From: Rhodosorus marinus CCMP1338
Taxonomy: Eukaryota; Plantae; Rhodophyta
Reading direction: 5' to 3'
NCBI GenBank assembly: GCA_029953675.1
Contig: JAMWBK010000012.1
Coordinates: 496,001-560,000, forward strand
DNA: 64,000 nucleotides
Made by a program: the position numbers and the translations under genes. Below are positions 6,725 to 58,158 of this stretch, piece after piece; within the stretch, counting starts at the first letter, position 1, and the number at the start of each line of letters is the position of its first letter. The notes below the pieces were generated by a model, which worked only from the letters and a program-made list of their open reading frames with translations, did no database searches and was not told the origin of the DNA.

Positions 6725-6926
6725 GAGCATCCTGTTGAATACTTGGAACTGTTGCGGCGTTTAAATGTCTCTCTGTGGCGATATTCGAACAGCATGCTTG
6801 CCGAGACGCGCCATCGGCGCCTGGGTTTGCACGCTTCCCTACCTAGTTCTTAGTTGCTTTTCACGGTTTGCGTAGCGCTTTAGGCTATGCTAATATGCTA
6901 ATAAAGCCAATAAAGCCAATAAAGAC
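6725..6926 (+). mobile_element. Family B 5'-truncated copy with 12-bp TSD AATGAACAGCTT
   Basis: (AATAAAGCC)n tail; TSD at 6713-6724 and 6927-6938. Confidence 0.9.
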
Positions 6927-7142
6927 AATGAACAGCTTCATTCACCACAGAAGGCGTCATACGGAACTGTTCAAGGATTTGAGTATTGATGGTCAAGAAT
7001 TGTTGTGAAATTTAAGTCTTAATCGTATAGTAGTATAGTTTTATTTTCGCATTTCATAAATACATGACATTCTGGTTTGTTGTTTTGGGGTTGAGGCCCT
7101 AGAAGTCATTCAGAAGTCGTGTGAGAGTGTCTTCTCGGTACC

Positions 7143-19986: not shown

Positions 19987-20289
19987 CATGTATCCATATG
20001 TGTTTGGAAAATTCTCCTAAGCAAAAAACATACTCAAAGCGTCAAATTTGTTTTTGGAGGAGCGCAAGGCATTCGCCGGATTGAAAATCTCAACGAGTGG
20101 GTTTGAGGTTTCGGTTGGGGAAGGTCTTGTTTGTCTGAGGTAATTTTTTTGGATGAAATATCTGATTTTGATCAATGACATCTCCGCAGCACCTCGCACC
20201 CATTCCCTCCGCTCCTCATTTCTTCTTCGCTGTTCGAGGGCGTAGGAAGGCTTGGAAGAGATCCGCCAATATTAGAAACCTACTCAAAG

Positions 20290-25582: not shown

Positions 25583-27388
25583 CTAGAACCAACCGGATAC
25601 GACGTTGTCGACGAAATCAGCGACGTCGTTTGTGTAGTCCACCGCGGCATTATATGCGTCTTCTGCACCGTCCGCGACAGCCTCTTCGGCGTCTTCTGCA
25701 GCATCGTATACGTAATCTGCCATGTCCTCGACATTATCTTCAATTCCCGAGGTCAAGTCAGCAATGGCATCTGCGGCGGCGTCTATGGCACCCTCGGAGG
25801 TGTTTATGGCGTCCTTGCAAAAGGCAGAGGTGTCGTTGGCGGCGCTTGCAATCGCAGTTCCTACTATGTCGCCCGTGGTATCGAAGAAGTCTTCGGCGTG
25901 GGAGACGATCCACGTCAGCTGACTATCGACAAAGTTCGCGACGGCGGTAAAGAACTGCGCGATGCCACCGATATTAATGCTGAATCCAAACTGGTCGTTC
26001 TCCAGGTCGAATGCTGCAGTCACGGCGAGCGATATACCTCCCCCCAGTTCAAGCCCAAAGCTTACACGTATCTCTTCGGTGTTCACCAGGAATCCCATGG
26101 ATACGCCGCTGCTGGAGGAGTCAAGACCATCCAGCAGTTCCACTGCGCTCGAAACTTCCCAGCCGGAAAGCCAGCCAAGTGCGTCAGCTGCACCATCGAT
26201 AGCCTCGAGGATCGAAGTCGCGAAGGTCACGACGGTATCCAGGATCGCGTTGCTCTCCTGCGTGTACAAGTAGACACCCGGATACACAGTCGTTCCAGTT
26301 GACAAACTGGCCGTGGCGGTGGTGAGATACGCGGTGAACTCAGCGAGCTCCATGTCCTCAAAATCTGGGAGAGCTCCGAGGGTCAAGCTGCTGAGCTCAA
26401 GGTTCCAGTCGAGCTCTCCAGTCATGAGGATTGAGATGTCGATAGAGGATAGTGCATCCAGAATGTCAGCACCAGCTTCTTCGACTGAAGCGGCGTTGAT
26501 CAGGTCATTGAACTCGGAGGCATCAGCGGTGGTGTATACGGTTCTCTGGAAGCTTCCACTGAGGGACACGCAATCCGGCAGACTGAACTTTTCGGAACTT
26601 ATGTCCACGTCAACGGCGTCAAAGTAGGTTCCGGCGAGGGCGATCTCCTCCGCTCCATTGGCTGTCATGACGGTGCCGGTGGTCTGGAAGGAATTGGTCA
26701 GGGAGACGCCGACGGCGATGGCGTCAAGGGCGAGCTCGACGGATTCTCCTACGACCGAGGACAGACCGCCGGATCCCTCAAGGGCGGCGGTGTTGGCGAA
26801 CAGGCAGTTGATCAAATTGGAGTTGACGGTGAGGGCGAAGCTAGGCAAGTCACTGCACGTGGTGAAAGCCAGGCACATTGTCAGGTATTCTCCAGACTCG
26901 ACAGTGGGACAAATCGCGGTGATTGCAGGGATGCTGAACGCCAACACTGACCACTCTCCGCTGTCCGCGACGGGGATCATGCTACAGCCCGAGGCATCGA
27001 TACCGTCGTCCTCCGGCTCCAGAATTGCCGACGCCTCAAAATCCCCCAAGCACACAGCTGAGTCCATTACCCCGGAGGTCTTCTCGTACGCACTCAGCGC
27101 ATCCACTAGAGCGCTCACCGCTCCATCCGCCACCGTCTCGATCACCGGAGAAAGGTCCCCAGCGCCTTCCAGAACAGAATCCATTGCGTTGGTCAGCAGA
27201 TCCACGAAGTCGCTCAGCGTGGCACATCCCAGGTACCCATCCGCAGCGCTGGGAAAGATCCCTGTCGGAGTACACGTCGAGCTTCTGGACGACTTGATCG
27301 AGTCCAGTTTCAGATGTCGAACTGGAACGCCGGAAACGGCAACAACAGCCGCGCACAAGACCATCAAAGTCACTCTTAAGCTAATCAT
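25583..27388 (-). CDS. Secreted hyperacidic protein of unknown function (601 aa)
   Basis: Long intronless ORF; signal peptide MISLRVTLMVLCAAVVAVSG from ATG 27388; D/E/A/S/T-rich; TATA upstream. Confidence 0.88.
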   Translation of the reverse strand: MISLRVTLMVLCAAVVAVSGVPVRHLKLDSIKSSRSSTCTPTGIFPSAADGYLGCATLSDFVDLLTNAMDSVLEGAGDLSPVIETVADGAVSALVDALSAYEKTSGVMDSAVCLGDFEASAILEPEDDGIDASGCSMIPVADSGEWSVLAFSIPAITAICPTVESGEYLTMCLAFTTCSDLPSFALTVNSNLINCLFANTAALEGSGGLSSVVGESVELALDAIAVGVSLTNSFQTTGTVMTANGAEEIALAGTYFDAVDVDISSEKFSLPDCVSLSGSFQRTVYTTADASEFNDLINAASVEEAGADILDALSSIDISILMTGELDWNLELSSLTLGALPDFEDMELAEFTAYLTTATASLSTGTTVYPGVYLYTQESNAILDTVVTFATSILEAIDGAADALGWLSGWEVSSAVELLDGLDSSSSGVSMGFLVNTEEIRVSFGLELGGGISLAVTAAFDLENDQFGFSINIGGIAQFFTAVANFVDSQLTWIVSHAEDFFDTTGDIVGTAIASAANDTSAFCKDAINTSEGAIDAAADAIADLTSGIEDNVEDMADYVYDAAEDAEEAVADGAEDAYNAAVDYTNDVADFVDNVVSGWF

Positions 27389-27492
27389 GTTCTTCTTTAC
27401 TGTTTTGCTTCTAGTAGGTTGATGCTCTTCTGAACTTCTCTTATATTTGCTTTTGACCACGGACCACTTCTTCAAGTCGAGCTTCTCGGGGG

Positions 27493-33546: not shown

Positions 33547-36500
33547 TGTTTGTCTGCTTTCAAAGTACTCTCTTTCAGCCTAAAAAGGTTGGCTATGATC
33601 CTTGATGATCAGCTTCAAGCGTTTGAGTAGTGAGGATGCGTCGTCCTATATATACCTGTAGCGGGCAGAGCCATAGTTTCAGCTCCATCGAGTCCTCACA
33701 ACCCGATCAGGTTGGGGGGGGGGGGTGCGGCTCGGAGTTAGTCGAAGTACGTAGGAAATTGATACGACAAACCTTCATGCTCAAATGATCTTAGTCATCC
33801 TCTTGAACGACGCGCTTATTTGTTCGCAGCTTGGAAGCCGAGCGGAGGCCCCACGTCACCAGTGTCGACTGAACCCGTCCACAATTCTGTGGAGCTTCTC
33901 GTGATCAATCGGATTTTGAGGGAATCACAGCACTGAATATGGAGTGGATCATAGCTAGCAGCCACCACTGCTGGCCTCCACCGTACGAGCGGGAACACCA
34001 CATCCCCGCGGGGCGCCGTGGCACTTCGTCGGCAATCCAGTTTGTATTGAATCTACTTTTCTTCGCTGCAACTGATGATCAAACAAAAAGTCCAATAAAA
34101 AATTTTAGTATAGATTATAGTACTAATGCATCCAATAGAAAATGCTTTTACTTGAGTCTTTTGAATAATATCCTTAATACTTCTTATTATTTTGTATTAT
34201 GATGTTGTCCAGGCTATATTGATTTGTTTATCTCACAATATATTCGTATCGTCGAATAGAAGAACTTAAAATCGTATTGTTTCCAATAACAATGGACGCG
34301 AATGGCTAGCTGAAGACATATACCCGTTTCAAAGTAATTCAATATCAGGAAGCGGTCTCGTGGATGCCGTTCAACGACAAGGGTTTCGCGTCTGCTTGGT
34401 TGCTGGTTGCTCACGCATCATGGCCTCCCTCTAGTTTCACACATAGGGCGCGGAGCTCTTGAGGGCATTGGGATGGGTTGACGAAGCGATTCTCGTTCTA
34501 CAACAAACACAACTGGACTCTCCAGCCCCGATTTGTTGCAAAGTTCATCGTTGTTCACGAGAGACCTGAGATTTGTTCGACGCCCAACTCGGGACATCCC
34601 TATAGCCATGCAGTGCTCTGAACGTCAGGATATCCTTCCGCGTCACAGTGCCGTCCCAGCTCCAATTCGATTGCTTTCCCAACGCTCTTCATCATCTTTT
34701 TTTTTTTCTATAAACGAACAGTATGATGAAAATTTGAGCGCGTCGGGTGATAAAGAAACTCACACGCGTTTAAAGGACAGTACAAACCAACTACTATTCA
34801 ACCCACCCCACAGGAGGAGCTGCGTGTGTCCTCGACGACTCCTCCTTTCCATCCTGGCAGACAGGCTACAAAATTGCCAGACAGTCTACGTGCTTTACAC
34901 AGGAGGGCCATCCAATTCAGCATGAAACAGATTTTTCAGCTCCAGGCGTTGCCCCTCCAAGCTCCGACAATGACTCGTAACAGCTTCGGGGGGGATCCCC
35001 AAGATCCACGTCCATTTCGGAGCATCCCCAAAACATTCCTAATTGTCTTTATTTCTGACAGTATAGACTGAATTATTGATATTTAACGGCATAGTGCAGC
35101 ATCACTGATATTTTCTTACGATATCAAGAATATTTATATTCGTTTTAAGTTATAATGTAAGCACCAACGCCGTTTATCATCTTCGTTAGAAACAACAAGA
35201 AAGTTTTTAGTATAATTGTATTGTTCTTCTGGACCGTTTCCGGGGTCAGATTTATATTATATACAATACTCCATACAGTAAAAACTATGTGATGGTTGTT
35301 AAAATAAATAATTTACTAGTCATGTACGTAAAAATTGGTATCCATCCGATCGTAATTTCTTGGGAACAAGAATTCTCGTCCGCGGTGAAGCCCTTGTCTC
35401 AAATACAATTGTGTAATTCAACAAATTTTTGAAGCTCTGTACTAATATTGTACTGTTAGTACATCTTGAAGGTTCTGGAACACAACTCGCAAGCAAACTG
35501 GCGGTTCTCCTCGTGGACACCCGCGACGTGTCTCGTAAGGCATTGTACATCGGGTGACTTTCAGTGATCCTCAGGGAGCAAGGAGTCCGGTATGTTGTTT
35601 TAGACAAGAGATCTGAAAGACGCAGTTGACTACTTTTGCCCGTAACATCCTCTCAAAATATGAGAATGTGTTCGAAGGACTCCGCGGAGTTTGGGGTTTT
35701 GCCTAGTGCGATAACTCTCAAACGCTTTTGAAGATGCTGAGGAGTGCGACGCGGGTGCCTGAGATCCAACGCGGAGATAGGTTCTTTGGTTAGAGGCTCA
35801 TGCATGGTTCTCCGGGAGATAAATATGATTTAGAAAGCTTCTTTAATTTCATCTGCATGTTAGAGACTTCACGCATGGTTATCCGGGAGGTAATTTTGAG
35901 TTAGAAACCTTCATTAATAGATAAGACCTGAAAAACACAGCTGACGGCCTTTGTCTCTAACATCGCGTCAAGACATGAAAATGTGTTCGAAGGACCCCAA
36001 AGGTTTGGGGTCTTGCCTATAGCGGTAACTTTCGAACGCTTTTGAAGGTGCGGAGGGAGCGCCGGAGCGGGGATGTATGATATCCAAGGTGGAGATGGGT
36101 TCTTCGGTTAGATCCTTCACGCAAGGTTCTCCTGGAGATAAATACGAGTTGGAAAGTTTCATTAATTTCATGCGCAGGTTTAACCGATGTGAGGTTATCC
36201 TCATAGGTCAACGTATTGTCCACTTACTAAGACAGCGGTTCAAGGACTACCTAGTAATGGGGGAGATTGAATAAGCCCACTACATCTCCTACACAGTAGT
36301 AATCCACAAGCTATCGAAATCAAACTTGCCCGATGTGATGATGGATCTCCCGGGGATTGGAAAGCTGTAGCGCGTTTCTTGCCAAGGTCCGTTTCATCTC
36401 TCACCACGGGTGAGACGAGGATGGTGGGATCCTCTATGGTGCCTGTCGCTGTCGTCGGTTCCTGATCTTCTAGATAGATAGGTGGATTGCTCGGTTTGCA

Positions 36501-36724
36501 GGGAAAATCTGTGTCCTGACTATCAACATTTGAAAATCACGTTTTATGTTCTTTACTCAAAGATCCCGAAAAGACGAGAGCAATGAAAACGTTTTATACG
36601 AAAACAAGGCTAAAAACGCGATCTGCTAAGGTGGCGGAGGGGAAGATGAGATGAGATGCTCAAATATCTCCAAGACGTGTGGGTGATCCCTTCCGCCGGG
36701 GAGGGAGAGGTTCCCGCTGGAGAC

Positions 36725-37453
36725 TTATGCGGTCTCGTCAACCATGTCTGGCTCTTCCAGCAGCTCGGGCACTGGCAGCTCGGGCACTGGCAGCTCCGGA
36801 TCAGGCAGTTTAATGTGATCCTTGCAGATCAAAGGCACGGAGCACCTGGTGAACCAGTCGTAATCGTTCTTGCTACACCCGTAGCCGAAGGTCGGCGGGG
36901 TGGCATAGATCTTCTTGGGTGCCCAGTCGCACTTGTTCTCCTTCGCGCAGTACCACTTCTTGGCGATGACCTTGATGAACAGGCAGATGTCAGAGTTGCA
37001 GCAGCCTTCCAAATTCTCTCCTGGGTAGGCGTAGAACTCATTGAGGCAAACGTAGAGAGTGTGCTTCTTGAAGAGACCGTAGGCCTTGGCCTGGAACGGA
37101 TTCTTGATGTCCTTGTATGCACAGTTGGCATCAGCTCCTGCCTTGATGGCTGAGAACTTGTAGCCGTCAGCGGCGTAGAAGTAGAACTTGATGCACCTCT
37201 TGCCGTGGTAGTCGACGATGCTGGTGCAAACAAATCCGACCTTGCCCCATTTGCCCCCGATGAGGAGTGGGTAGCACTTCTTGTTCTCGTAGTCGTATAT
37301 CTTCACGTGGTCATACTGATCAGCATAGTAGCTGCACTTCTTCTCATGGAAATAAGGCTTCCATGGGTGGTACTCGGGTTCGTGATCGGGCTTAGCGCTC
37401 GCCATACCCATCAGGGCAAAGGCGGCGATCAATACAATAACTGTGGTCTTCAT
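36725..37453 (-). CDS. Secreted Tyr/Lys-rich 14-Cys protein, paralog 2 (242 aa)
   Basis: Intact ORF, signal peptide, C-terminal PELPV repeats; TATA-equivalent reads TACATAA (37547-37553). Confidence 0.93.
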   Translation of the reverse strand: MKTTVIVLIAAFALMGMASAKPDHEPEYHPWKPYFHEKKCSYYADQYDHVKIYDYENKKCYPLLIGGKWGKVGFVCTSIVDYHGKRCIKFYFYAADGYKFSAIKAGADANCAYKDIKNPFQAKAYGLFKKHTLYVCLNEFYAYPGENLEGCCNSDICLFIKVIAKKWYCAKENKCDWAPKKIYATPPTFGYGCSKNDYDWFTRCSVPLICKDHIKLPDPELPVPELPVPELLEEPDMVDETA

Positions 37454-38714
37454 TCTTCTCTTTATCTTCAGGTTCTCTCTCTAGGCTGCTTAACTTGATG
37501 TTCTGCGGCTTGAACCACTTTCGCTGTGAGACGCGAACCTCATCGCTTATGTAGTCTTCGTCATCATCAAGAAGACACCAATCTCTCCTTACTATGTCAT
37601 CCCAATGGACTCTGTCAAATTCTCAAAGCTCCTTATTTCGTGGGAACCTCTGGTCTTAGAAGCTTTAGCGCCATTAGACGTTACAATACGTAGAGAACTC
37701 GATCTGACACGCTGAAGTTCTTTTCTCATCGGTCTGGGAGAGAAAAAGCAAAGAAGCCATCCTCATCGTCTTCCTCGACATCACAGTGGAGGACCGCGAG
37801 GCTAGCGTCATATTACGTGGACTGCTTGTGCCGAGAACCATCAACCATTTCTCCTGAAGGTTGGATGGCAAGTCGGAGAGAAAACAGAGCGCGGCGGGTG
37901 TCTGGTGAACTGACTCCATCTTCTCACCATTTTCTGAATCGGTAATCGTGACACCCAGGTTGCATTGCTTCTCATCTCAGATCGAATTTAGTGAAAACCT
38001 GGATGCCCTGAGTACTGACTCAGAAAATGGTCTGGATATGGAGTCAGTTCACGTGACGTCCGCCGCGCTCTGCTTTCTCTCCCACCTGTCATTCAACATT
38101 TAGGCGAAACTAGTGTAGGTAGGTAGAGACGAAGACTACGAATTCATAAATTCATCGGGACAGGCAATTTCAGCACGTGGGGTGATAAAAAAAACTCACA
38201 CGAGTTCAAAGGACAGTATAAACCATCTGCAGTCAGCTCACACGTATTCAAAGGACGAACAGTACGATGAAAATTTGAGCGCGTCGGGTGATAAAGAAAA
38301 CTCACACGCGTTGAAAGGACAGCACAAACCAGCTACTATTCAACCCAACCCTCACCAGAGGAGCTCTTGTTGCCCTCGACGACTCCTCCGTTTCCATCCT
38401 CGCAGGCAGAGGGGGCTACTACAAAATTTCCAGACAGGCTACGTGTTTTTCACAGAGGGGCCATCCAATTCATCATCCAGATGTTGCCCCTCCAAATTAG
38501 GACAATGACTCGCAACAGCCCCGGGGGGATCCCCAGGATCCACGTCCATTTCGGGACATCCCCAAAAAAATTCCTACTTGTCTTTATTTCTGACAGAATA
38601 GACTGAATTATTGATATTTATCGCCATACTACAGTATCATGGATATTTTCTTACGATATCAAGGATAACTATATTTGTCTAAAGTTATACGTGGTCGGCG
38701 TTTATCATCTTCAT

Positions 38715-40520: not shown

Positions 40521-40559
40521 TACGGCAATGATTTCTCTTCATAATACGAATGCACTTCA

Positions 40560-41696
40560 GACGACGGTATGCTGAGAGTATGTCCAGTCTGCCTCGCGCT
40601 GAGGGTCGCTCCCACCGGTTCCAGCCTTTCATTGTGGAAAGCTTTGGTCACGTGGAGAAGTCGGGTTTAGAGTGGTTGCGGAAATGTTTCACTGAGCATC
40701 CTGTTGAATAATTGGAACTTTTGCGGCGTTTAAGTGTCTCTCTGTGGCGATATTCGAGCAGCATGCTTGCCGAGGCGCGCCATCGGCGCCTGGGTTTGCA
40801 CGCTTCCCTACCTAGTTATTAGTTCATCATAGGGCATACGGTTGAGGTTGAGTCGGAACTGCCCAGATCAATCTCGGACTCTGCAAAGCCCCGTTGTGTA
40901 GCCGATCTCCTCGTCTCCGACGCTGCTGCCCGACGCTCAACATATGTGGACCTTGCGATTACCTGCCCCGTGGCCAGCGCCCACCTCACCGCAGCCGCCC
41001 GCCGCCGGGGGGCCGCGGCTTCAGCCCTTCGAAGAGTTAAGGAACAACGGTATGCTGAGAGCATGGCCAGTCTGCCTTGCGCTGAGGGTCGCTCTCACCG
41101 GTTCCAGCCATTCATTGTGGAAAGCTTTGGTCACGTGGATAAGTCGGGTTTAGAGTGGTTGCGGAAATGTTGTGCTGAGCATCCTACTGAATATTTGGCG
41201 CTCTTGAGGCGTTTAAGTGTCTCCCTTTGGCGACATTCCAGCCACATGCTTTCCGAGGCGCGCCATCGGCGCCTGGGGTTGCATGCTTCCCTCCCTAGTT
41301 ATTAGTTCATCTTCACGCCTTGCGTAGCGCTTCAGGCTATGCTACTTGGACAAATCCAGGAGGAGTTGTTGTCTAGGATTGGAGTTTTGTTTCTTTTTCG
41401 GTCGCGAGCGTGTTCGTTTACGGGAAGCGCTTCCTCTGGTACGCCTTCCCCTCGATTTTCCGCGGGGCGTCGTTTGCATTTGCAACTACTTCTGTCTTCC
41501 GGGTGGGTGTGTTGCGGGGCCTTTCCTCTTTTTTTTATTATTAGGTCATCTTCACGCCTTGCGTAGCGCTTCAGGCTATGCTAGTAAAGTCCAGGCTATG
41601 CTAGTAAAGTCCAGTAAAGTCCAGTAAAGTCCAGTCCAATAAAGCCAGTAATTTCCAGTAAAGTCCAGTAAAGTCCAGTCCAGTCCAGTAAAGCCC
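40560..41696 (+). mobile_element. Concatemer B(40560-40825)+B(40826-41345)+5'UTR-like segment(41346-41535)+B 3' end with long tail; 9-bp TSD TGCACTTCA
   Basis: TSD at 40551-40559 and 41697-41705. Confidence 0.85.
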
Positions 41697-42648: not shown

Positions 42649-42961
42649 ACAATAGCCATCCGTCTGCGCTGCCATTTGCAAACACTATCTCAACTCCGGC
42701 CACTACAGGTATATTGAAATACGAAAGAAAACTATTTTCCGTCTGTATGACCAATAGGAGAAGCATCCGGTTCTTTTTCACCATTCATAATCCCTTAACA
42801 ACCTTAAAATACTTGTCATTGGTAGTCATTATTCTAATTAAAGAATAAAAATAGCATGTCCTTTAAAATACTAAATTATACAATTTAATCTTTTTCGCTT
42901 TATCCGAATGAATGAATGGTTTAATCGGAGGCTGAAAAAAAACCCCGAGGGGAAAAAAAGA

Positions 42962-45900
42962 CTAAGCGCGGCGAAGTACTCGCGCCTCCAACATCAAAGC
43001 GGCATTCATGCGCCACAGCAGGAAACTTAAGCGGGTAAACAACGATTGAAGACGGTCAGGGCGTTCGCGGAACAACTCCCGAAGCCAGCGAGAACCAACA
43101 GAGTCCATGAACCCAAAGCACTCAATGATCAGGGGTACCAAGCGATGTGCTAGTGCCGAAGCACGAACACCAGGGGAAGACAAAGCCCCCGCGTATTTGA
43201 TCTCTTTGCGGCGTCTCATGCTGGCGGCGGCAGATCCACGGCGCTCCCCCGCAGCCGGGAGATAACGACTAGCTTGAGGGTTAGGAACAGCAAGATCAAC
43301 GTATGTGGTACGGCGGCTGTCGTCACAGGTGATCACCAGGTCGGCTACACGGCGTTCATCATTTTGAAAGTCCGCGACGGGTAAAGGTTTCTCACGTTCG
43401 ATTTCCAGACCGGCTTGCCGGACTATAGGCCGAAGTTCCCGGTATAACAGGTTCAAGATCCGTGTGTGGCGGCGGGTTCGAGCACCTTTCACCGCCGGGC
43501 AACTAGCGAGCAGGTGGGCGCCAAAATCTGCGTTGTCTTCAGTCTGAGAGCAGAGAGGGCACGACGAACCCATCTCGTACGGCCAAGGGGGCTGATGTAA
43601 GCCGAGGTATAAGCGCAGTGAAGTACGCACTTCGAAATCCGACAGTGTGAGTGGCGGAAAGGCTGGTACGGTCATGAGCCACTGAGAGCTAATAACCCCT
43701 CCAAGACTACGTAGGCGGGCGCGAGCGCGAGAAGATGAGACCATCTGCGCGAGGAGTCGGCCATATGCAGCACGGTGCAAGTCCCAAGAAAGGATATTTT
43801 GCAGCGCATCCGTGCGTGCTTGAGCTCGGCTCCCAGCGCGCTGGGAATCATCAGGAGCATCAACTGGAACTTCTTCTTCTGCGGCAACCACTGGGTCAAT
43901 CTCCCTAGAACAGGTTCAGGCGCAGGACGAATCCCCGGGGCGGAGCCTCGAGAGCGGTCAAATACAGCTTGCCAGTCAGGAAGACGGGGTTGAACGGTTT
44001 CAGGGAGACTAGTACAGGAATTCAGGGCGGTTTGGAGCTCCAGAAACAAGTCTTGGGCGCTTTCCGGTACGCTGGGAAGCAAGACACCCCGCGAGAGGCT
44101 CGCCATCAAATTGCGGAACTTCGAGATACCCAAGCTGCTCAAAGTGGGAAGTGCGGTTCCCCAGGCCCCTACTGCAGCTGCAGGTTGGACCACAACACGA
44201 TTGCAGAGGCCCAGTCCCCCCAATCGCAATGGGAGGCCTACCTGGGCGCGCACAACATCACAGGTGGGTCGCGGCAGAGCGCTCAGCTCTTCATCGAGAA
44301 AATACCCCAGGTCACGGAAACTTTCAGCATCCGCACGAGTGGCCAACCACCGGCCCCAATGAGTTGGAAGTGAGCGAAGCCAATAGGTTAACCGCTGACT
44401 GCAACAATACCGAAACAGCAACAACGAGCACTGGAGAAAGCCCGGAGGTAGCCGTCGAAGCTCTGCAACCAGCTGTCTGTGCTTACCGAGGAGCTGCAGC
44501 AACTCGCCTTCAACGAAGGACGGCGACCCGTAGGGGATGCCTAAGTGGACAAAACCATCCGGTCTCCAAATATCCTGGAACGACGCAGGTACCTGCTGCT
44601 CTTGTGCAGCTACACCTCCCCAGTAGAACGATTTGTGATGATTAACCTCCAGGTCAACCCGCGAAGCCAAGGAGCGGAGACGATCATAAGCGAGTGCTAG
44701 AGTATCAAGGGGCCCCAGGAGGCACACGTCGTCGTGGTATGCAACTGTACGAACCTGCGGGAATTCGGAGCGAAGACGAAGCAAGACGAGTTGTAGTCCA
44801 CAGGCATGTAGGAAAGGGGACAAGGGATCACCCTGTTGTACCCCTGTGCGCGCCGCAAACGTGTGTGAGGAAGCGCCAAGGGTGTCATATGTAGCCCCAC
44901 GACCAAGCGGAGAATAAAGTCTACTAACAAAGGGAAAGCCTACAGGGAAGACTTCGCGCACCACGTGCATGAGAGCCGGACGAGAGACGCGGTTGAACGC
45001 ATTGGTAAAATCTACAGAGAGGAGCCCAGAATCTGGGGAGTACGCCATTTCCGAACGGAGTAAAACAGACAACAACTCACAGCCACCACGATAGCCCACG
45101 CCTAACTGCACGTGCCCAAAGAAACGGCGGGATTCGGGAACCAGGATTTTCACTAACCATCGCGCCGCCAATTTGCGGACCACCTCAACCAGGCCAATAG
45201 GGCGAATAGCAGGGCTCGAGGCCGTGTGGCCGGGCTTCGAAAGCAGACACAACTGAGAACGCCCGACCAAGAACCACGCACACTCACACAGGGGATCACC
45301 ATTCACAAGCGCTTCGACCACCCACGCCAACGCCTTCAAACCTTCATCACTTAAGAAACGGAGATATTCCACCCGCAGCCCCGAGGGCCCTGGGGAACGG
45401 CCCTTCGGAGCATCATGAACCAACTCACGCACCGCCTCCAGATTGACCACTAGCCGCGCACTGGGATGTGGCGCGGCGCGGTACTCTTCCAACACTGATT
45501 CAAACGAGGAGTCCCAAGGGGAGCCTTCCGAGGGAAAGAGCAAACGGAGCGGTGAAGAAAGATCATTGGAGTATGGAACCACAGGTTGCCGCTGCTGGAG
45601 GATCCCGGCTGCCCGCCGCAGATCACCGCCTGCCACCGCGTGACGCGCCCGATTCTGTCGAGAAGACCTAAAAGCTGAGGGAGCACTAGGAGAAAAGGAA
45701 GAGAGAGAAGCGAAATAAAGACGTTCGAGGTCCTCAAAGTCGCCGGAAAGGAACATTTGCAGTTTTCGGCGAGGGTGGACCCGGCGAGGATGTGGGTTGA
45801 GGGGGACGGTAGAGGAGGTGAGCACGAGGCGGGGAAAAAAGAACAAGAGTTCCCAGCGAAGAGAGCAGTGAGGGTTCGCCGCGACCTGCTGCCAGAGAAA

Positions 45901-46104
45901 ATCCAACACCAATCCTAGGGGCTTATGAAGTCGACGAGGGAGCCGTACGGCCGTGCTCTGACGACAAAGGGGAAGGGAACCGTCCGGGTAGGAGGCGACA
46001 AGGTGCGAAAACCACGAGAGAACACGCTCATGCCAGGCTGAACGGTCACTGGTAAGCAGGGGTAACCGGGACGACACGCACGCGGAGGAGGAAGACTCAG
46101 ACAT
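42962..46104 (-). pseudogene. ORF2: reverse transcriptase plus CCHC knuckle plus restriction-like endonuclease, one frameshift at about 43903-43905 (1047 aa if repaired)
   Basis: GRSPGPSGLR, IRPIG, DFTNAFN, GVQQGDPLSP, AYHDD, LGIPYG, LPLRLGGLG, CPLC-x11-H-x4-C, RRHTRI, RRVADL, YVDLAVPNP, KEIKY, PLIIECFG. Confidence 0.92.
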
Positions 46105-47509
46105 CGGGCCTCCCCTCAGTCGGGAAGGCAGATCGAATATCCGGAGGAGGTGCCTCGGAGGGAGGCTCAGGAGCCGCACGACGCTTACGTGGAGGGCGCA
46201 CGAAGGAACTAAAAGACCTGAAGAAAGTAGACACAGGGTTTTCAGCAGCGGAGTCTTGACTGAGGGTGTCCAGAGCCAGCGGATTCGGAGAGGCCGATGG
46301 TGCTTCTGCCATGTCGGTGTCACGAGCCTCGGAGACAGGGCGAGGGGAGGAAGGGTGCTCAAGAGTCGGCGGCAGAAGGTCAAACGCAGGGTGGGCTTCC
46401 AGCAGGGTGCCCTCAGTGGAGAGGAAGGCCTCTAGCGCGGTGCGGAGGACCCCGCGAGGAGGAAAACGCGCGAAGAGGCTCGCCTGTATGCGCGAGAGCC
46501 GCGCCGCATGAGTGTGTAGCGCGACAACCGAAGCCTGCGAGGCATCCAGGTTTTGCAAGGCCGACGGAGGAACCCAGCCGGCGTCAAAACGATCGAACTC
46601 GACAAACAAAGAGACATGAGGACGAGTCAGTATCATGTTGGCCAGAGCAGAGCGCTGGGGCGCGGGGGTGGTTACAAGCAATTGAAGGAACTGGTAAGCC
46701 GAGTCAGTAACAAGAAAACAGGCATGAGGGCCCGTGAAGTCCACATATAGGAATTCAGACGGGGCCACCCCAAGGGAGGAAGCCATGGTGTCGCGAAAAT
46801 CGCGTTAGTGGACGGGCGCGCGGCCCCGACCACGAGAGGGGGTCTGGGGACGCACGTTCGTCATCCAAACAAAGTGGAACGGAGATAGTTGGCGAGAAGA
46901 GTCAATAGGGATGTGTTGTGGCATCATACGCACCATTGCCGTCGTGCGTTGTTCAGAAGAGCCCCTGCGTAGGACCTGCGAATAGGTCGCACGTGGGGCA
47001 CTGGAGGGAGCAGGATTCGGGCCCGACGCGGGCCCAGGAGGCGTCTGTCCTTGAATAGGGGTAGGCCAGTCGGAATCAGGAATGGCCGGAGCGGAGCGCT
47101 CGGGTCGGGTGGAGGTAGGCCCCGCTGTACCGTGCGGATCCGCGGGGACGGGCACCGGGGGGTATAGGGCAGGCGCGGAGGCGGAGAAGCGCTCCAAATA
47201 GGCGATCAGCAGGGGCAGGCGGTGTTCCTGGGAAGCAGTCACAAGAAGACTCGTCAGTTTCGAGCAGATCCCAGGGGCTAACTCGTCAGCGCAGTCCGTG
47301 AGGGTGGCCGCGGTACTAAACCCGCCCACGCAGAGCTCCACGCGCGCTGAGAGAACGGCTCCGTCCGCCGGAATAGGTGGGGAAACCCCAACTATAACGA
47401 TTGGAAGGTGTGAAAAACCGATTCCCCCACGAAACCCCCAAAAAGAGAACTTGTTCCCAACGTTTGCAACCAAAGAAAAACCACCACGACCTCCAAGGGG
47501 CGCTAGCAA
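46097..47509 (-). pseudogene. ORF1 of the family A element (about 470 codons, one in-frame TAA at 46805-46807, no early ATG)
   Basis: Track ORFs 46805-47509 and 46097-46786 share a frame; ATYSQVLRR motif; Pro-rich linkers; the stop overlaps the ORF2 ATG. Confidence 0.7.
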
Positions 47510-48895: not shown

Positions 48896-49967
48896 TCAGT
48901 ATTAGCATAGGCATGAATTAAAAACATATCCACTGCATAGGGCAAATAGCAAACTTGCCCCTATGGCCCGATTCAAATGCTTCAGATTCGAGGGGTACTT
49001 GTCGAGTTGTTCTCGACGTGCCTACCCAAGCCAATTCATTTATCGCAACCTACATAGGGCTTGCAATACGGCCCTATGGAACTATCACCAGCTTAAATGG
49101 TGTCGTTCAAATCACCCGGTCCGATGAGCCTTTGGACATATTCAGTGATCCCCAGGGAGCAAGGAGCCTGGTATGTTGCTTTAGGTGGGATCTGAAAAAC
49201 ACAGCTGACGGCCTTTGCCTCTAACATTGTGTCAAAACATGAAAGTGTGTTCGAAGGACCCCGCGAAGTTTCGGGTTTTGCCTATGCGGTAACTCTCGAG
49301 CGCTTTTGAAGGTGCAGAGGGAGCGCGCCGGAGCGCGGATGCCTGATATCCAAAGCGGAGATAGGTTCTTCGGTTAGAGACTTCACGCATAGTAAATTTG
49401 AGTTTGAACCCTTCATTCATTTAATGTGCGGTTTAGCCGACGTGAGGTTATCCTCATGGGTCAACGTATTGTCCAAGACCCCGGTTCAGTAGTGATCGAG
49501 CTCTCCTGCTAGAACAAGTTCACTACATCTCCCACCAAACAATAATCTATAAGCTATCGAAATCAAACTTGCCGGATGTGATGATGAATCTCCCGGGGAC
49601 TGGAAAGGTGCAGCGCGTTTCTTGCCAAGGTCCGTTTCATCTCTCACCACGGGCGAGACGAGGATGGTGGGATCCTCTATGGTGCCTGTCGCTGTCGTCG
49701 GTTCTTGATCTTCTTGATAGATAGGTGGATTGCTCGGTTTGGAGGGAAAATCTGTGTCCCGACTATCAACATTTGAAAATCACGTTTTATGTTCTTTAGT
49801 CAAAGATCCCGAAAAGACGAGAGCAATGAAAACGTTTTATACGAAAACAAGGCTAAAAACGCGATCTCCTAAGGTGGCGGAGGGGAAGATGAGATGAGAT
49901 GCTCAAATATCTCCAAGACGTGTGGGTGACCGCTTCCGCCGGGGAGGGAGAGGTTCCCGCTGGAGAC

Positions 49968-50696
49968 TTATGCGGTCTCGTCAACCATGTCTGGCTCTTC
50001 CAGCAGCTCGGGCACTGGCAGCTCGGGCACTGGCAGCTCCGGATCAGGCAGTTTAATGTGATCCTTGCAGATCAAAGGCACGGAGCACCTGGTGAACCAG
50101 TCGTAATCGTTCTTGCTACACCCGTAGCCGAAGGTCGGCGGGGTGGCATAGATCTTCTTGGGCGCCCAGTCGCACTTGTTCTCCTTCGCGCAGTACCACT
50201 TCTTGGCGATGACCTTGATGAACAGGCAGATGTCAGAGTTGCAGCAGCCTTCCAAATTCTCTCCTGGGTAGGCGTAGAACTCATTGAGGCAAACGTAGAG
50301 AGTGTGCTTCTTGAAGAGACCGTAGGCCTTGGCCTGGAACGGATTCTTGATGTCCTTGTATGCACAGTTGGCATCAGCTCCTGCCTTGATGGCTGAGAAC
50401 TTGTAGCCGTCAGCGGCGTAGAAGTAGAACTTGATGCACCTCTTGCCGTGGTAGTCGACGATGCTGGTGCAAACAAATCCGACCTTGCCCCATTTGCCCC
50501 CGATGAGGAGTGGGTAGCACTTCTTGTTCTCGTAGTCGTATATCTTCACGTGATCATACTGATCAGCATAGTAGCTGCACTTCTTCTCATGGAAGTAAGG
50601 CTTCCATGGGTGGTACTCGGGTTCGTGATCGGGTTTAGCGCTCGCCATACCCATCAGGGCAAAGGCGGCGATCAATACAATAACTGCGGTCTTCAT
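49968..50696 (-). CDS. Secreted Tyr/Lys-rich 14-Cys protein, paralog 3 (242 aa)
   Basis: Differs from paralog 2 by one residue (T4A); TATATAA at 50790-50796. Confidence 0.93.
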   Translation of the reverse strand: MKTAVIVLIAAFALMGMASAKPDHEPEYHPWKPYFHEKKCSYYADQYDHVKIYDYENKKCYPLLIGGKWGKVGFVCTSIVDYHGKRCIKFYFYAADGYKFSAIKAGADANCAYKDIKNPFQAKAYGLFKKHTLYVCLNEFYAYPGENLEGCCNSDICLFIKVIAKKWYCAKENKCDWAPKKIYATPPTFGYGCSKNDYDWFTRCSVPLICKDHIKLPDPELPVPELPVPELLEEPDMVDETA

Positions 50697-51757
50697 TCTT
50701 CTCTTTATCTTCAGGTTCTCTCTCTATACTGCTTAACTTGACGATCTGCGGCTTGAACGATTTTCGCTCTGGGCCGCAAACCTCATCGCTTATATAGTCT
50801 TCGCCATCATAAAGAGGACACCAACGTCTCCTTACTATGTCATTCCCAATGTACTCTGTCAAATTCTCAAAGCTCCTTAGTTCGTGGGGACCTCTGGTCT
50901 TAGAAGCTTTAGCGCCATTAGACGTTACAATACGTAGAGAACTCGATCTGACACACTGAAGTTCTTTTCTCATCGGTCTGGGAGAGAAAAAGCAAAGAAG
51001 CCATCCTCATCGTCTTCCTCGACATCACTGTGGAGGACCACGAGGTTAGCGTCATATTACGTGGACTGCTTGTGCCGAGAACCACCAACCGTTTATCGAG
51101 GGATTGATTAAATCGCAATGCTTGTCTATTGGAAACCATCAGCCGTTTCGCCTAAAGGTTAGCAAGTCGGAGAGAAAACAGAGCGCGGCGAACGTCTAGT
51201 GAGCTGCTTCTCATCTCACATTGAATCGAGTAAAACCTGGATGCTGACTCACGGAGTACTGACTCAGAAAGCGGCCCGGATTACTGAATCAGAAAGCGGT
51301 CCGAAGTTTCGGTCGGCTCACTAGATGTCCGCCGCGCTCTGCTTTCTCTGCGGCTTGTTATCCAACCTTTAGGTGAAACTGCTGATGGTTTCCACAGACG
51401 CACATTGCGACTTCATCACTCCTTCGCGACAGATAATTTGAGCACGCAGGGTGATAGAGAAAATAACTCACACGCGTTTAAAGGACAGCATAAGCCAGCT
51501 ACCATTCAAGCTACCCTCACGTGAGGAGCTGCTTCTGTCCTCAACGACGCCTCCGTTTCCATCAGCGTAAACAGGTTCAAAAAATTGTCAGGCAGGCTAC
51601 TTGTTCTTCATAGAAGGGATTCAGTTCAATATGAAACAAGTTTTTAGCTCCAGGTGTATGACCACCAAAGCTCTGACAATGAAAACTCGCAACAGCGGGG
51701 AGATCGTCAGCGATCCACGTGCACTTCGGAACATCCAAAATTCCTAATTGTCTTTAC

Positions 51758-51828
51758 CATTCGTTTCGTTACGAACGAACGAACGAATGGTTTAATCGTT
51801 TCGTTACAGTGTAAAACCATTCGTTCGT
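51758..51828. mobile_element. Cluster of three family A tail-only fragments (+, -, +)
   Basis: ACCATTCGTTTCGTT, CGAACGAACGAACGAATGGTTTAATCG, AAACCATTCGTTCGT; absent from paralogous sites near 35050 and 38585. Confidence 0.75.
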
Positions 51829-52021
51829 AGAATCCACGGTAGATTGAATTATTGATATTTATATGAATATTATTGTAATATGATTATTTTATTACGATAT
51901 TAAGCTTTCTTGTATTCGTTTGAAGTTATAATTTATCAATCGGGCGCTTATTTGAATGAATTTGTTTAATCGATTTTGTTAGGTTGTGTGGCGACAGCGG
52001 CCGTACGACATACGTTGATCT

Positions 52022-52965
52022 GGGCTTTACTGGTGGGCTTTACTGGTGGGCTTTACTGGTGGGTTTTACTGGGCTTTACTGGGCTTTATTGGACTTTACT
52101 AGCACTTTACTAGGGCTTTATTAGCATAGCCTGAAGCGCTACGCAAGGCGTGAAAAGAAACTAAGAACTAGGGAGGGAAGCGTGCAAACGCAGGCGCCAA
52201 TGGCGCGCCTCGGCAAGCATGCTGCTAGAGTATCGCCATAGGGCGGCACTCAAAAGCCGTAAAAGCGCCAAGTACTCAGTAGGATGCTCAGCGAAACCTT
52301 TCCGCAAACACTCTAAACCCGACATATCCACATGACCAAAGCTTTCCACAATGAAAGGCTGGAACCGGTGAGAGCGACCCTCGGCGTAGTGCAGACTGGC
52401 CATGCTCTCTGCATACCGTCGTTCCTTGGATATGTCGAAGAAAACCCTTCCAAGCTCTTTGAATCTTTTTATGAATGATCCTTCCGCAGGTTTACTGGAC
52501 TTTACTAGCATAGCCTGAAGCGCTACGCAAGGCGTGAAGATGAACTAATAACTAGGGAGGGAAGCATGCAACCCCAGGCGCCGATGGCGCGCCTCGGAAA
52601 GCATGTCGCTGGAATATCGCCAAAGGATTACTAGCATACTAGAATAGCCTGAAGCGCTACGCAAGGCGTGAAAAGGAACTAAGAACTAGGGAGGGAAGCG
52701 TGCAAAACCAGGCGCCGATAGCGCGCCTCGGCAAGCATGTTGCTAGAATATCGCCACAGGGCTGCACTAAAACGCCGAAAAAGCGCTCAGTACTCAGTAG
52801 GATGCTCAGCGAAACATTTCCGCAACCACTCTAAACCCCGACATATCCACATGACCAAGGCTTTCGACAATGAAAGGTTGGAACCGGTGGGAGCGACCTT
52901 CGGCGTAGGGCAGACTGGCCATGCTCTCGGATACCGTCGTTCTTTCACTCGTCGAAGAGCCGGAG
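52022..52965 (-). mobile_element. Trimer of family B 3' ends plus an rRNA-derived segment within an 11-bp TSD TACGTTGATCT
   Basis: Tails at 52022, about 52491 and about 52627; TSD at 52011-52021 and 52966-52976. Confidence 0.9.
52438..52492 (-). rRNA. Captured fragment: 18S rRNA 3' end (AACCTGCGGAAGGATCATT, 52474-52492) plus probable start of ITS1; not a functional rRNA gene
   Basis: 19/19 match to the conserved eukaryotic SSU rRNA 3' terminal sequence; ITS1 identity is inferred from adjacency. Confidence 0.8.
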
Positions 52966-53585
52966 TACGTTGATCTTGGTGTTTCTAATCCTCAGGCTCG
53001 TCGTTAGTTACCGGCTGCGGGAGAGCGCCGTGGAATTACCCCTGCCAGTATGAGATGTCGCAAACAGTTGAAATATGCGGGGGTTTTTCTCTTCCCCAGG
53101 CATTCGTGCTTCGTCTCTAGCTCATCGCCAGGTACACTGGCCAGTGCGTGCTTTGCGTTTCTAGATTCCGTTGGTTCTCGTTGGCTTCGGGAATTTGTTC
53201 CGCGAACGCCGTACCGCCTGTCCTCGTTGTTTACCCGTTTAAGTTTCTTGCTGTGGCGTATGAGCGCTGCTTTGATGTTGGAGGCGCGCGATCTTCGCCA
53301 TGCTTATCTTTCTTTCCCCTCTGGGTTTTTTTCTCTCGGTCTCCGATTAATGAAATTCATGCATATTGAGTGAATTTGTTGGGGTTGTGTCATTGGTAGG
53401 TATTACCGCCAATTAGCGAGCCCCCTAGTGGCAACCAAAAATCTACTTTTTTCACCTCCCAAACTGTATCAGTAGTCCACCTTTTTCTTAGAAGCTTGGA
53501 AGCGTTTTTGACGAGGATACGTGATCAGAGTCAATCTACTCTGATGAAACTGTACTCATTTACTGGAGGTGCCTTGGCACGTATC

Positions 53586-55387: not shown

Positions 55388-56490
55388 ATATAAAAATTGG
55401 AGTCTACCGTGACTTTGTAGTTCTAAGAATTACGTCCCGGCTTAAGCATTTACATAAAAATACTCTCCAAGGACGCGAAGCGCTAAGCAGCCACAGACTA
55501 GATGGGTAAAAGTATGCAATGATCGCTTCCCTAGCAACAATATAAAGTTGAAGTATTGTACTAATAGTACGGTTAGTACCCGATAATGGTGGCAGTGGAC
55601 ATCGAATGACCCTCAGTGGTCCGCCGGGGGCAAGGAGCCTGGCATGTTGCTTTAGATAAGATATGAAAGACACAGCTGAAGACCATTGTCTCTAAAATCA
55701 TCTCAAAATATGAAAATGTTTTCGAAGTACCCCGCGAAGTGTTTGGTTTTGAGTTCCTGCCCCAGACCCCGGCGGGATTGCCAATCAGCTTACCTAAGCG
55801 GGAACACGCTCTCGAACACCTCTGCGGTAATGCGGTAACTCTTGAACACTTTTGAAGGTGGGGAGGCAAGCGCGCACGGGTGTCTGAGATCCAAAGCGGA
55901 GATGGGTTCTTCGGTTAGAGACTTCACGCGGTGGTAAATTTGAGTTTGAAACCTTCATTAATTTCATCTGCGGTTTAGCCGACGTGAGGGTATCCTCATA
56001 TGTGCTACTTATTGTCCACGCACCAAGACACCGGTTCAAGGTAGTAATTGAGCTCTCCTGCGAGAGCAAGCTCACTACATCTCCCACCGAACAAATATCT
56101 AGAAGCAATCGAAACCGAACTTGCCGGGGGGGATGATGAATCGCCAGCGGACTAGAAAGGTGCAGCGGGCTTCTTGCCAAGGTCTGGTTCATCTCTCACC
56201 ACAGGCGAGGCGGTGGATGGTGGGATCCTCTATGGTGCCTGTCGTTATCACCAGTTCTCGATATTTTAGGCACATGGATTGCTCAGTTTCAAAGGAATAT
56301 CTGTGTCCGGAGTAGCACTTTTTTTGACGATCACGTTTTGTGTTCTTCTTTATTGCAATACCCCGCAAAGACGAGAGCAATGAAAACGTTTTATACAAAA
56401 ACGAAGCCAAAAAACGCGGTCTGCGAAAGGGGCGGAGAGGAAGATGATATGCTAAAATATCTCGGAGATGTGTGGGTACCCCTTGGAGAC

Positions 56491-57204
56491 TTATGCGGTC
56501 TCGTCAACCATGTCTGGCTCTGCAGGCAGCTCCGGCACTGGCGGCTCCAGCTCAGGCAGTTTAATGTGATCCTTGCAGATCAAAGGCACGGAGCACCTGG
56601 TGAACCAGTCGTAATCGTTCTTGCTGCATCCGTAGCCGAAGGTCGGCGGGGTGGCATAGATCTTCTTGGGCGCCCAGTCGCATTTGCTCTCCTTCGCGCA
56701 GTACCACTTCTTGGCGATGACCTTGATGAACAGGCAGATGTCAGAGTTGCAGCAGCCTTCCAAATTCTCTCCTGGGTAGGCGTAGAACTCATTGAGGCAA
56801 ACGTAGAGAGTGTGCTTCTTGAAGAGACCGTAGGCCTTGGCCTGGAACGGATTCTTGATGTCCTTGTATGCACAGTTGGCATCAGCTCCTGCCTTGATGG
56901 CTGAGAACTTGTAGCCGTCAGCGGCGTAGAAGTAGAACTTGATGCACCTCTTGCCGTGGTAGTCGACGATGCTGGTGCAAACAAATCCGACCTTGCCCCA
57001 TTTCCCCCCAATGAGGAGTGGGTAGCACTTCTTGTTCTCGTAGTCGTATATCTTCACGTGGTCATACTGATCAGCATAGTAGCTGCACTTCTTCTCATGG
57101 AAGTAAGGCTTCCATGGGTGGTACTCGGGTTCGTGATCGGGTTTAGCGCTCGCCATACCCATCAGGGCAAAGGCGGCGATCAATACAATAACTGCGGTCT
57201 TCAT
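56491..57204 (-). CDS. Secreted Tyr/Lys-rich 14-Cys protein, paralog 4 (237 aa)
   Basis: Near-identical to paralogs 2 and 3 except the Pro/Glu tail; TATATAA at 57298-57304. Confidence 0.93.
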   Translation of the reverse strand: MKTAVIVLIAAFALMGMASAKPDHEPEYHPWKPYFHEKKCSYYADQYDHVKIYDYENKKCYPLLIGGKWGKVGFVCTSIVDYHGKRCIKFYFYAADGYKFSAIKAGADANCAYKDIKNPFQAKAYGLFKKHTLYVCLNEFYAYPGENLEGCCNSDICLFIKVIAKKWYCAKESKCDWAPKKIYATPPTFGYGCSKNDYDWFTRCSVPLICKDHIKLPELEPPVPELPAEPDMVDETA

Positions 57205-58158
57205 TCTTCTCTTTGTCTTCAGGATCTCTCTCTACACTGCTTAACTTGACGATCTGCGGCCTGAACGATTTTCGCTCTGGGCCGCAAACCTCATCGCTTA
57301 TATAGTCTTCGTCATCGTCGAGAAGCCACCAATGTCTCCTTACTATGTCATTCCCAATGGACTCTGTCAAATTCTCAAAGCTCCTTATTTCGTAGGGACC
57401 TCTGGTCTTAGAAGCTTTAGCGCCATTAGACGTTACAATACGTAGAGAACTCGATCTGACACATTGAAGTTCTTTTCTCATCGGTCTGGGAGAGAAAAAG
57501 CAAAGAAGCCGTCCTCATCGTCTTCCTCGACAGCACAGTGGGGGACCACGGGGCTAGCGTCATGGTACGTAGAGTGCTTGTGCCGAGAACCGCCAACCGT
57601 TTTCTCCAGAGGCTGGAAAACAACTCCGAGAGAAAGCAGAGCGCGGCGGATGCCTAGTGACCTGACTCCATCTCCGGAACGTTTTCTGAGTCAGTAGTCG
57701 GGGCATCCAGGTTGCACTGCTAATCATCCAAATCGAATTGAGTGAAACCTCAACGTTAGAAAATTGCGTTTGTCATGTTCGTATTCTCCACCCTGATGCG
57801 GAGTACGCAGAGACTGCATAGTTGGAGAGCAGTGGCGAGGTCGAGGTATGACCAAGCACACCGCTGCAGTTAGCCTGACATGCTCGAGTCAGTAGCCCCT
57901 CAAGGAAAGTGTTGCGGGTCAGCCGCTCAGTTTCTCTTAGCGCCACCTCGGGTGCTCTGATGACATGTTGGAAAACCTTACAAATCGTTTCCTTCATCCT
58001 CCTTGCATCTCTCTTTCCAGTAAATCTTCTGCATTGGGTTCCGTTAAAGCAGGCAGGAACAGGAAGCGTGCTGGTTGTAAGACTGTCGTGGAAGAGAAAG
58101 AATCCCCATCGCGTTCTGGACGAAAAATTATCCAACTAGCCCAGAATATCCGATCCGT

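Follow-up and report, generated by a model that had tools for sequence, protein, structure and literature searches.

A composite insertion within a family A copy

We analyzed a stretch of 64,000 nt from the genome of Rhodosorus marinus CCMP1338 (GCA_029953675.1, JAMWBK010000012.1, positions 496,001-560,000; hereafter the window), in which fragments of one long interspersed nuclear element (LINE) family, B, form a composite insertion within a copy of a second LINE family, A. The window is eukaryotic and repeat-dense. Including a further 31.5-kb stretch of the same assembly (L001 and L004), in which both families recur at 85-99% identity, about 96 kb of the genome were inspected. Coordinates refer to the window unless a contig is named, and positions within B to the copy at 17594-20010 (Bref).

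The insertion is bounded by two copies of the 11-bp motif TACGTTGATCT at 52011-52021 and 52966-52976, both read on the plus strand and identical at 11/11 positions, with 944 bp (52022-52965) between them. At up to one mismatch the motif occurs eight times in the window against 0.8 expected, an excess due only to its belonging to the repeated family A, in whose endonuclease domain it encodes YVDL. When the flanks are joined with a single motif copy, they align without gaps to five other A copies (12xxx, 13xxx, 40xxx, 43xxx and 48xxx), each of which carries the motif once at the same position. Motif search and flank alignment thus identify both copies, which as features have no strand, as a target site duplication (TSD). 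The host A copy lies on the plus strand and is 5'-truncated at about 51983-51987. Its 5' part, which includes the left TSD copy (51983-52021), is collinear with the same five A copies, and it resumes behind the right TSD copy with the C-terminal endonuclease region and the 3' end (52977-53357), A homology extending to about 53357. An initial reading of the sequence, made without database searches (hereafter the sequence-only reading), had described both the 11-bp TSD around 944 bp and the A copy continuing behind it, and the alignments bear this out.

The insert reads on the minus strand and contains, in this order, segment 3, segment 2, a piece of 18S rRNA sequence and segment 1, all co-oriented and in sense. 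Alignment of the minus strand to Bref confirmed that the three segments are 5'-truncated B copies, each with a complete terminus of the 3' untranslated region (3'UTR) and a tail of its own, as had been proposed. Segment 3 (52640-52965) corresponds to Bref 2033-2362, carries two private frameshifting indels and is joined by its 5' end to the right TSD copy; its 13-nt tail (52627-52639, GTATGCTAGTAAT) includes a mini-repeat of the last 3'UTR bases. Segment 2 (52506-52626, 121 nt) corresponds to Bref 2240-2365 and is followed by a 15-nt tail (52491-52505, GTAAAGTCCAGTAAA). In the direction of reverse transcription, both begin with a tail and the complete 3'UTR terminus ...CAGGCTAT(G/T)CTA. Segment 1 (52122-52440, Bref about 2030-2365) comprises the last ~95 codons of open reading frame (ORF) 2, open to the stop, and the 3'UTR; its homology to B can be called certain from 52426 on, and probable already from 52440. 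The 100-nt tail of segment 1 (52022-52121), built of CCAGTAAAGC / CCACCAGTAAAGC-type units that are 10 and 13 nt long, adjoins the left TSD copy. A combination of perfect TSD, terminal tail and 5' truncation at the opposite end is the hallmark of target-primed reverse transcription (TPRT), and the junction of the left TSD and the segment 1 tail is its start point.

Two short sequence likenesses were seen at these edges. On the plus strand, the 10 nt with which the tail starts (52022-52031, GGGCTTTACT) match the target past the nick (52977-52986, TGGTGTTTCT) at 6/10 positions, which may be microhomology between RNA tail and target or chance. At the 5' edge of segment 1 (52425-52440), the 11-mer CGACATATCCA (sense) equals, in reverse complement, the TGGATATGTCG that B itself carries about 100 nt farther downstream (comparison sites 52320-52330 and 52839-52849; the segment 3 bases differ at the homologous place). 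This match may be a chance one (E about 1) or the trace of a snap-back.

A piece of 18S rRNA between segments 2 and 1

About 50 nt of non-B sequence, overlooked in the sequence-only reading, separate the tail of segment 2 from segment 1. In B orientation, on the minus strand, this piece starts with an exact match to the last 17 nt of 18S rRNA, CCTGCGGAAGGATCATT (52474-52490, read from 52490 to 52474). The 17-mer is unique in the window, with 0.01 occurrences expected at up to two mismatches, and is contained in the widely used primer for the 18S 3' end, GTAGGTGAACCTGCGGAAGGATCATT; judged by this identity, it is the universal eukaryotic 18S rRNA 3' end. Rfam searches of the window and of the junction gave no match, as expected for a 17-nt piece. 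The adjacent 33 nt (52441-52473, minus strand, CATAAAAAGATTCAAAGAGCTTGGAAGGGTTTT) match neither B, A nor any other sequence read, and no other copy occurs in the window, L001 or L004. Since they directly follow the 18S 3' end, they possibly represent the start of internal transcribed spacer 1 (ITS1).

The 5' edge of the 18S piece is the C right after two adjacent adenosines of helix 45, the position of N6,N6-dimethyladenosine (m6,2A). The 18S rRNA is 1800 nt long in yeast and 1869 nt in human. Nearly all organisms carry N6,N6-dimethylation on this adenosine pair (yeast A1781/A1782, human A1850/A1851; PMC4472018). With the lengths given, the pair lies 18 nt from the 18S 3' end in both species. 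The modification is bulky and blocks reverse transcriptase (RT), and primer extension from ITS1 showed that in human it is already present on ITS1-extended nuclear precursors (PMC4472018). Synthesis of a cDNA that began at the 3' terminus of a precursor dimethylated in this way would therefore stop precisely at the edge of the fragment found here, and we infer that m6,2A caused the RT stop. The 18S piece is an RNA-level signature of template switching, separate from the argument based on the TSD. Whether the insert arose in a single event or in the two steps discussed below, the locus preserves a minimum of one template switch, onto and off the pre-rRNA.

Families A and B

Both families match the RT domain RVT_1 (A, E = 1.7e-11; B, E = 3e-8) and are 35-43% identical to each other over the RT; family A has an intact 903-aa ORF with RVT_1. 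The downstream, C-terminal ORF of A can be aligned with a solved R2 protein where its endonuclease region starts (CCHC/RHN; 9nl2, E = 7.5e-4), and the B C-terminus shows the string C..C..H....C - RRHT - ADL - YVDL, homologous to that of A. For the region comprising CCHC and the restriction-like endonuclease (RLE), no Pfam model matched in A or B. An apurinic/apyrimidinic endonuclease (APE) domain gave no Pfam match in the upstream A ORFs, and the B copies read all lack the N-terminus. The RT matches of A and B to R2 and to L1 ORF2p are equally weak. Based on this domain composition (RT, with a probable CCHC and RLE region), A and B are classified as R2-like LINEs of R. marinus. Identity with Penelope-like tandem elements with pseudo-long terminal repeats (pLTR) was considered and rejected, as no GIY-YIG domain was found in B and its C-terminus is of the CCHC/RLE type.

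R2 proper is specific for a site in the 28S rDNA. B inserts into A copies, B copies and unrelated sequence with differing TSDs, and Rfam found no rRNA gene in the window; B is thus R2-like in its domains, yet lacks the site specificity of R2 proper. Close relatives of the B C-terminal ORF were limited to R. marinus itself, a unicellular red alga (NDN08_000222/223 and MMETSP0011 transcripts, 62-84% identity). Family A seems to have been active recently, with the intact 903-aa RT ORF accompanied by a 309-aa CCHC/endonuclease ORF and copies (42908-47509, 12341-13217 and L001 15405-17995) that are 98.9-99.2% identical to one another; its nearest named relative is a Pyropia vietnamensis protein with 37% identity. 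One intact A copy has an ORF at 43672-46383, with a second ORF downstream of it.

The three B segments of the insert differ from each other by 10-12% and fall into two subfamilies, so that the differing 3'UTR variants of the sequence-only reading were confirmed. Segment 2 belongs to beta, with 97-99% identity to three other copies, and equals the beta consensus. Segments 1 and 3 are assigned to gamma, being 90% identical to each other and 83-88% to all else. Two simple derivations of the array were rejected. A local tandem duplication of segment 3 into segment 2, indicated by a period of 134 bp in Tandem Repeats Finder (TRF), is contradicted by the 12/12 sites differing between the two at which segment 2 carries the beta consensus base. 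Simple nesting, with one B copy split by another, is contradicted by segments 1 and 3 spanning identical B coordinates.

The same comparison bears on an origin at the DNA level, by unequal crossing-over, gene conversion or filler DNA at a repaired break, and on an assembly artefact in repeats. B and A fragments crowd the region, and the TRF period runs across segments 2 and 3, as either would lead one to expect. Segments of different subfamilies that diverge by 10-12% are, however, neither collapsed nor duplicated copies. Perfect TSD, tail and 5' truncation are marks of TPRT, and a co-oriented 18S piece whose boundary falls on an RNA modification speaks for RNA as the template. We therefore regard this explanation as extremely improbable.

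Other B insertions and composites

Solo B insertions in the inspected sequence have TSDs of 8-13 bp in unrelated sequence (AGATCAACGTA, AATGAACAGCTT, ATAGGTAAC, TTCCCTTA), among them those at 6723-6927 (AATGAACAGCTT) and 4803-5003 (ATAGGTAAC), and their targets are unrelated to the tail unit. Several adjacent B copies within the ~96 kb arose by separate insertion, each with a TSD of 8-12 bp; the one that ends at 39082, for instance, is nested in an older B-like 3'UTR and flanked by TTCC(C)TTA.

A second composite lies at 16043-16770 (minus strand), where a B insert (16052-16761) is enclosed by one 9-bp TSD, CCCTCACAC (16043-51 and 16762-70). On the minus strand it consists of beta Bref 1485-2021, a mini 3' terminus of 19-20 nt with a tail unit (16224 to 16205), and beta Bref 2237-2388 with a tail. 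A 3' end is missing from the upstream piece, and the middle one is too short for an insertion; template switching is the only simple explanation, and serial insertion cannot yield this structure. The downstream piece is 99.2% identical to segment 2, starts within 3 nt of it (Bref 2237 vs 2240) and is likewise preceded by a B terminus. The B copy that hosts this composite (14051-17597) is of subfamily alpha, and a further, 5'-truncated alpha copy (17594-19982) comes immediately after it. In addition, the final 8-20 nt of the 3'UTR are duplicated at B 3' ends at 6886-6900, 41572-41614 and 52627-52650, and these mini-duplications suggest repeated re-initiation on 3' ends.

A further composite was observed at 40816-41551. 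Here, an alpha/beta-like B copy covers 40551-40828 and continues from 41538, the interruption lying between copies of the 13-bp repeat TTATTAG(T/G)TCATC. The interrupting part comprises a beta segment (Bref about 1846-2359) that ends in ...GCTA without a tail and, behind it, a unique segment of 193 nt (41345-41537); the latter has T8 at its end, as a Pol III transcript would, and gave no Rfam match and no fold signal. A common 5' start of the B pieces at 40830 and at L004 about 2973 was considered and rejected, because the B sequence of the transcript contigs L005 and L006 places the two starts ~12 nt apart.

More head-to-tail B-B junctions were found at 17597/17594, in L004 at 2961/2973 and in the transcript contig L005 at 1047/1057. 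Together with the insert itself, these are far commoner than random insertion would give, as expected if B preferred its own tail repeats and the array had grown by fully serial nesting, with segment 3 inserting first and producing the TSD, followed by segment 2 and then by the 18S piece and segment 1, each into a tail. TSDs derived from tails would be invisible. The sequence-only reading had reported no inner TSDs and used their absence as a diagnostic. This holds for non-tail sequence, as a direct-repeat search of the region returned B homology, tail units, the outer TSD and nothing else. It does not hold for the tails, whose units supply possible cryptic TSDs, namely AGTAA(A/T) around segment 2 and, around the block of 18S piece and segment 1, CCAGTAAA, which occurs upstream of the 18S piece and again where the segment 1 tail ends. 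As insertion into a repetitive tail leaves only tail-like TSDs, the diagnostic fails: without the rRNA piece, missing inner TSDs alone cannot separate jumping from nested tail insertion. Serial nesting is nevertheless very unlikely, given that solo B insertions with clear TSDs lie in unrelated sequences with no sign of tail specificity. It leaves the 18S piece and its m6,2A boundary unexplained, so that a template switch would still be needed, requires segment 2 to have inserted before segment 1 although segment 2 seems youngest, and cannot produce the composite at 16052-16761.

The junction in L005 (JGI 3300016967, R. marinus transcript contig, 1-1211) joins B sequence of Bref 1318-2364 through 13 nt to beta-like B sequence that starts at Bref about 2202. 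Transcription of B arrays thus occurs, and a pre-formed array could have been copied as one RNA, either as a read-through transcript of a genomic array or after RNAs had been joined by an RNA ligase before reverse transcription. B fragments also occur within two longer transcripts, L002 and L006, one of them fused to a copia-type RT ORF, and RNA ligation before retrotransposition is documented for U6/L1 with RtcB (PMC6789731). The sequence-only reading had named a transcribed master copy of the trimer elsewhere as a possible source, and no such copy came to light: BLAST found neither the 18S/segment 1 nor the segment 2/18S junction a second time in the window, L001 or L004. For the 116-aa ORF that spans tail, 18S piece and segment 1, no exact record was found among public predicted proteins, and a homology search there gave only ordinary B C-termini. 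Read-through copying would, moreover, only shift the origin of the array elsewhere, and ligation presupposes RNA cleavage immediately behind the m6,2A pair. Processing at that site is not known, whereas RT is well known to stop there (PMC4472018). We consider an array formed elsewhere decidedly unlikely. A scan of viral contigs with the B 3'UTR gave no match.

One event or two

We regard the insert as a genuine template-switch chimera, probably joining four templates, and slightly favor the reading that it is one chimeric retrocopy made by the B machinery in a single TPRT event. Co-oriented RNA-derived segments are fused, the 3'-most of which carries a LINE 3' end and tail, and one TSD surrounds the whole insert, with a collinear empty site in the other A copies. 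Co-oriented pieces of which each B piece starts with a complete 3' terminus and tail are what end-to-end jumping onto RNA 3' ends predicts. Accordingly, the acceptors were copied from the 3' terminus in segments 2 and 3 and, with a short extension, in the 18S piece; one donor exit falls at the m6,2A block and not at an RNA end.

In the proposed course of events, the plus strand of the old A copy would be nicked after ...GATCT, and cDNA synthesis would begin on the repetitive tail of a B-gamma RNA, of which about 320-335 nt would be copied (segment 1). The enzyme would then move to the 3' end of a 3'-extended 18S precursor and copy the extension of ~33 nt and the last 17 nt of 18S rRNA, until the two N6,N6-dimethyladenosines stopped it. 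A jump to the 3' end of a B-beta RNA would yield a 15-nt tail and 121 nt (segment 2), and another one to the 3' end of a different B-gamma RNA a 13-nt tail and 326 nt (segment 3). Finally, the cDNA would be joined to the upstream target end, and second-strand cleavage 11 bp away would create the TSD. Conjectural in this scheme are the origin of all junctions in one event, the ITS1 identity of the 33 nt and the stop at m6,2A.

Several observations weigh against it, besides the transcribed junction in L005 and the cryptic tail repeats described above. Segment 2 has 0/121 private substitutions, compared with four each for segments 1 and 3 in the same columns (Fisher p = 0.038); over 322 nt, segments 1 and 3 have about 15-16 each (~4.5-5%). 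If the three segments were coeval, the gamma RNAs must stem from already diverged or decayed sources, and the two frameshifting indels of segment 3 likewise point to such a source. Apart from segments 1 and 3, no gamma copy was found in the ~96 kb, so that two gamma RNAs in one recent event are somewhat unexpected. Scans for R. marinus rDNA to set beside the 33 nt next to the 18S piece yielded none: of two metagenome scans, one gave nothing and the other a chance non-rDNA match (L003), and a scan of genome contigs gave none. Moreover, the evidence comes from one locus in one assembly.

The main rival is a history in two steps, in which an old chimera of gamma segment 1, pre-18S rRNA and gamma segment 3 occupied the 11-bp TSD and a young beta segment 2 was inserted much later at the boundary of the segment 3 tail and the 18S piece. 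It would account for the mutation-free segment 2 between two decayed segments that are mutually closest (90%), and for the 5-6 bases AGTAA(A/T) repeated at both ends of segment 2; the B copies at 39276 and 6724 show that B does insert in or beside B copies with its own TSDs. A mutation-free insert should, however, have kept an intact TSD of the usual 8-13 bp, whereas only the 5 bp AGTAA are shared at its ends, and a chance landing within a tail of ~10 nt is required. The beta piece of 99.2% identity with a nearly equal start behind a B terminus in the 16052-16761 composite points to a recurrent switch rather than a recurrent insertion. Furthermore, 13/23 coding differences between segments 1 and 3 are at third codon positions (p = 0.019). 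This excess suggests that part of the gamma divergence arose under selection and hence predates the insertion. We consider two steps rather unlikely, while dating by substitutions and codon positions gives borderline and partly opposing signals that do not settle the choice between one event and two.

The sequence-only reading had proposed that a single TPRT event stitched several RNAs together and that concatemer formation would be routine for the family. The first proposal gained from the 18S filler at the m6,2A block, the 16052-16761 composite and the 3'UTR mini-duplications and lost from the younger appearance of segment 2. The second agrees with the further composites and junctions, but not with the adjacent B copies that have TSDs of their own. 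That TPRT by the B RT regularly yields concatenated RNA 3' ends as a by-product in vivo, so that the genome records the RNA 3' ends and RT-blocking modifications that the enzyme met, is accordingly a tentative and somewhat doubtful proposition.

Other features of the window

A third repeat family of ~2.3 kb is present in three copies (35925-38228, 49189-51500 and 55830-57747) with 85-89% identity and has overlapping ORFs of 165 and 242 aa on opposite strands. In a non-repeated part of the window, a 630-aa ORF without Pfam match was found on the minus strand (25583-27475). Inverted short repeats (CCATTCGTTTCGTTACGAACGAACGAACGAATGG...) are clustered at 51750-51835, with a 25-nt exact match at 184-208 on the other strand; this cluster may be the terminus of a small DNA element.

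Comparison with known systems

Chimeras of L1 with U6, U3, 5S, 28S and other RNAs, formed by template switching, are described for mammals (bioRxiv 10.1101/2025.02.02.635956), and the WEIRD/Mg-SINE/MGL elements of Magnaporthe form bipartite as well as tripartite chimeras in which switch sites recur and which carry one TSD, of 14 bp in a tripartite element (PMC2104539). As in the insert described here, co-oriented RNA copies are fused directly with the LINE 3' end and tail at the 3' side, an abundant nucleolar or ribosomal RNA serves as partner, and switch points recur; in Magnaporthe, one TSD likewise surrounds the whole (14 bp, compared with 11 bp here). In contrast to those APE-type LINEs, the LINE involved here is R2-like with a probable restriction-like endonuclease, probably four templates instead of two or three are joined, the acceptors are mostly 3' ends of the same element (a homotypic concatemer), and one switch coincides with an RT-blocking rRNA modification. 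Template-switch chimeric retrocopies as such are thus already known; what is unusual is an RLE-type LINE in a red alga, the mostly homotypic acceptors and a junction at an RNA modification.

The R2 RT jumps end-to-end in vitro without a need for homology (Bibillo and Eickbush 2002, 2004, as cited in PMC12203849), and serial jumping is exploited in ordered two-template relay (OTTR; 10.1101/2021.04.30.442027). In both the assay and the insert, acceptors are copied from the very 3' end, no similarity between templates is needed and jumps are serial, and the domain architecture (RT, CCHC and RLE) is related. The former is biochemical, whereas the latter is a genomic footprint whose donor exits are not known as RNA 5' ends, and A and B are distantly related to animal R2 and lie outside the 28S rDNA. 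The R2-derived short internally deleted elements (SIDEs) and the non-autonomous R2/R1 hybrid elements are composites with internal junctions partly attributed to template jumps (PMC3414825). They too keep the 3' end needed for TPRT, the insert at 16052-16761 being comparable, but they form amplified, defined families, whereas each composite found here is seemingly a unique insertion.

Head-to-tail arrays of 5'-truncated copies also arise by other means. Zepp of Chlorella and the telomere- or microsatellite-specific LINEs of the R1 clade build arrays by nested insertion into their own tail or into simple repeats. Those elements are target-specific and their arrays are not known to contain cellular RNA filler, in contrast to B, whose solo insertions lie in unrelated sequences.

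Implications

Template jumping by R2-type RTs is established in vitro and used in RNA-seq library methods and gene-insertion tools, whereas natural footprints of serial jumps by these enzymes are few. If the single-event reading is true, the insert would add a four-template example from a red alga, with independent RNA-level evidence at one junction in the form of the 18S dimethyladenosine block. It would support jumping onto free RNA 3' ends as an intrinsic in vivo property of RLE-type LINE enzymes, and it would explain the head-to-tail B fragments that hamper annotation of this genome region.

Should B in fact concatenate RNA 3' ends as a regular by-product, the nucleolus would have held a 3'-extended, already dimethylated 18S precursor, and B or A would represent a naturally high-jumping RLE-type RT outside animals. 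B chimera junctions across the R. marinus genome would then chart in a natural way which 3' intermediates of pre-rRNA and which hard-stop modifications exist in a red alga.

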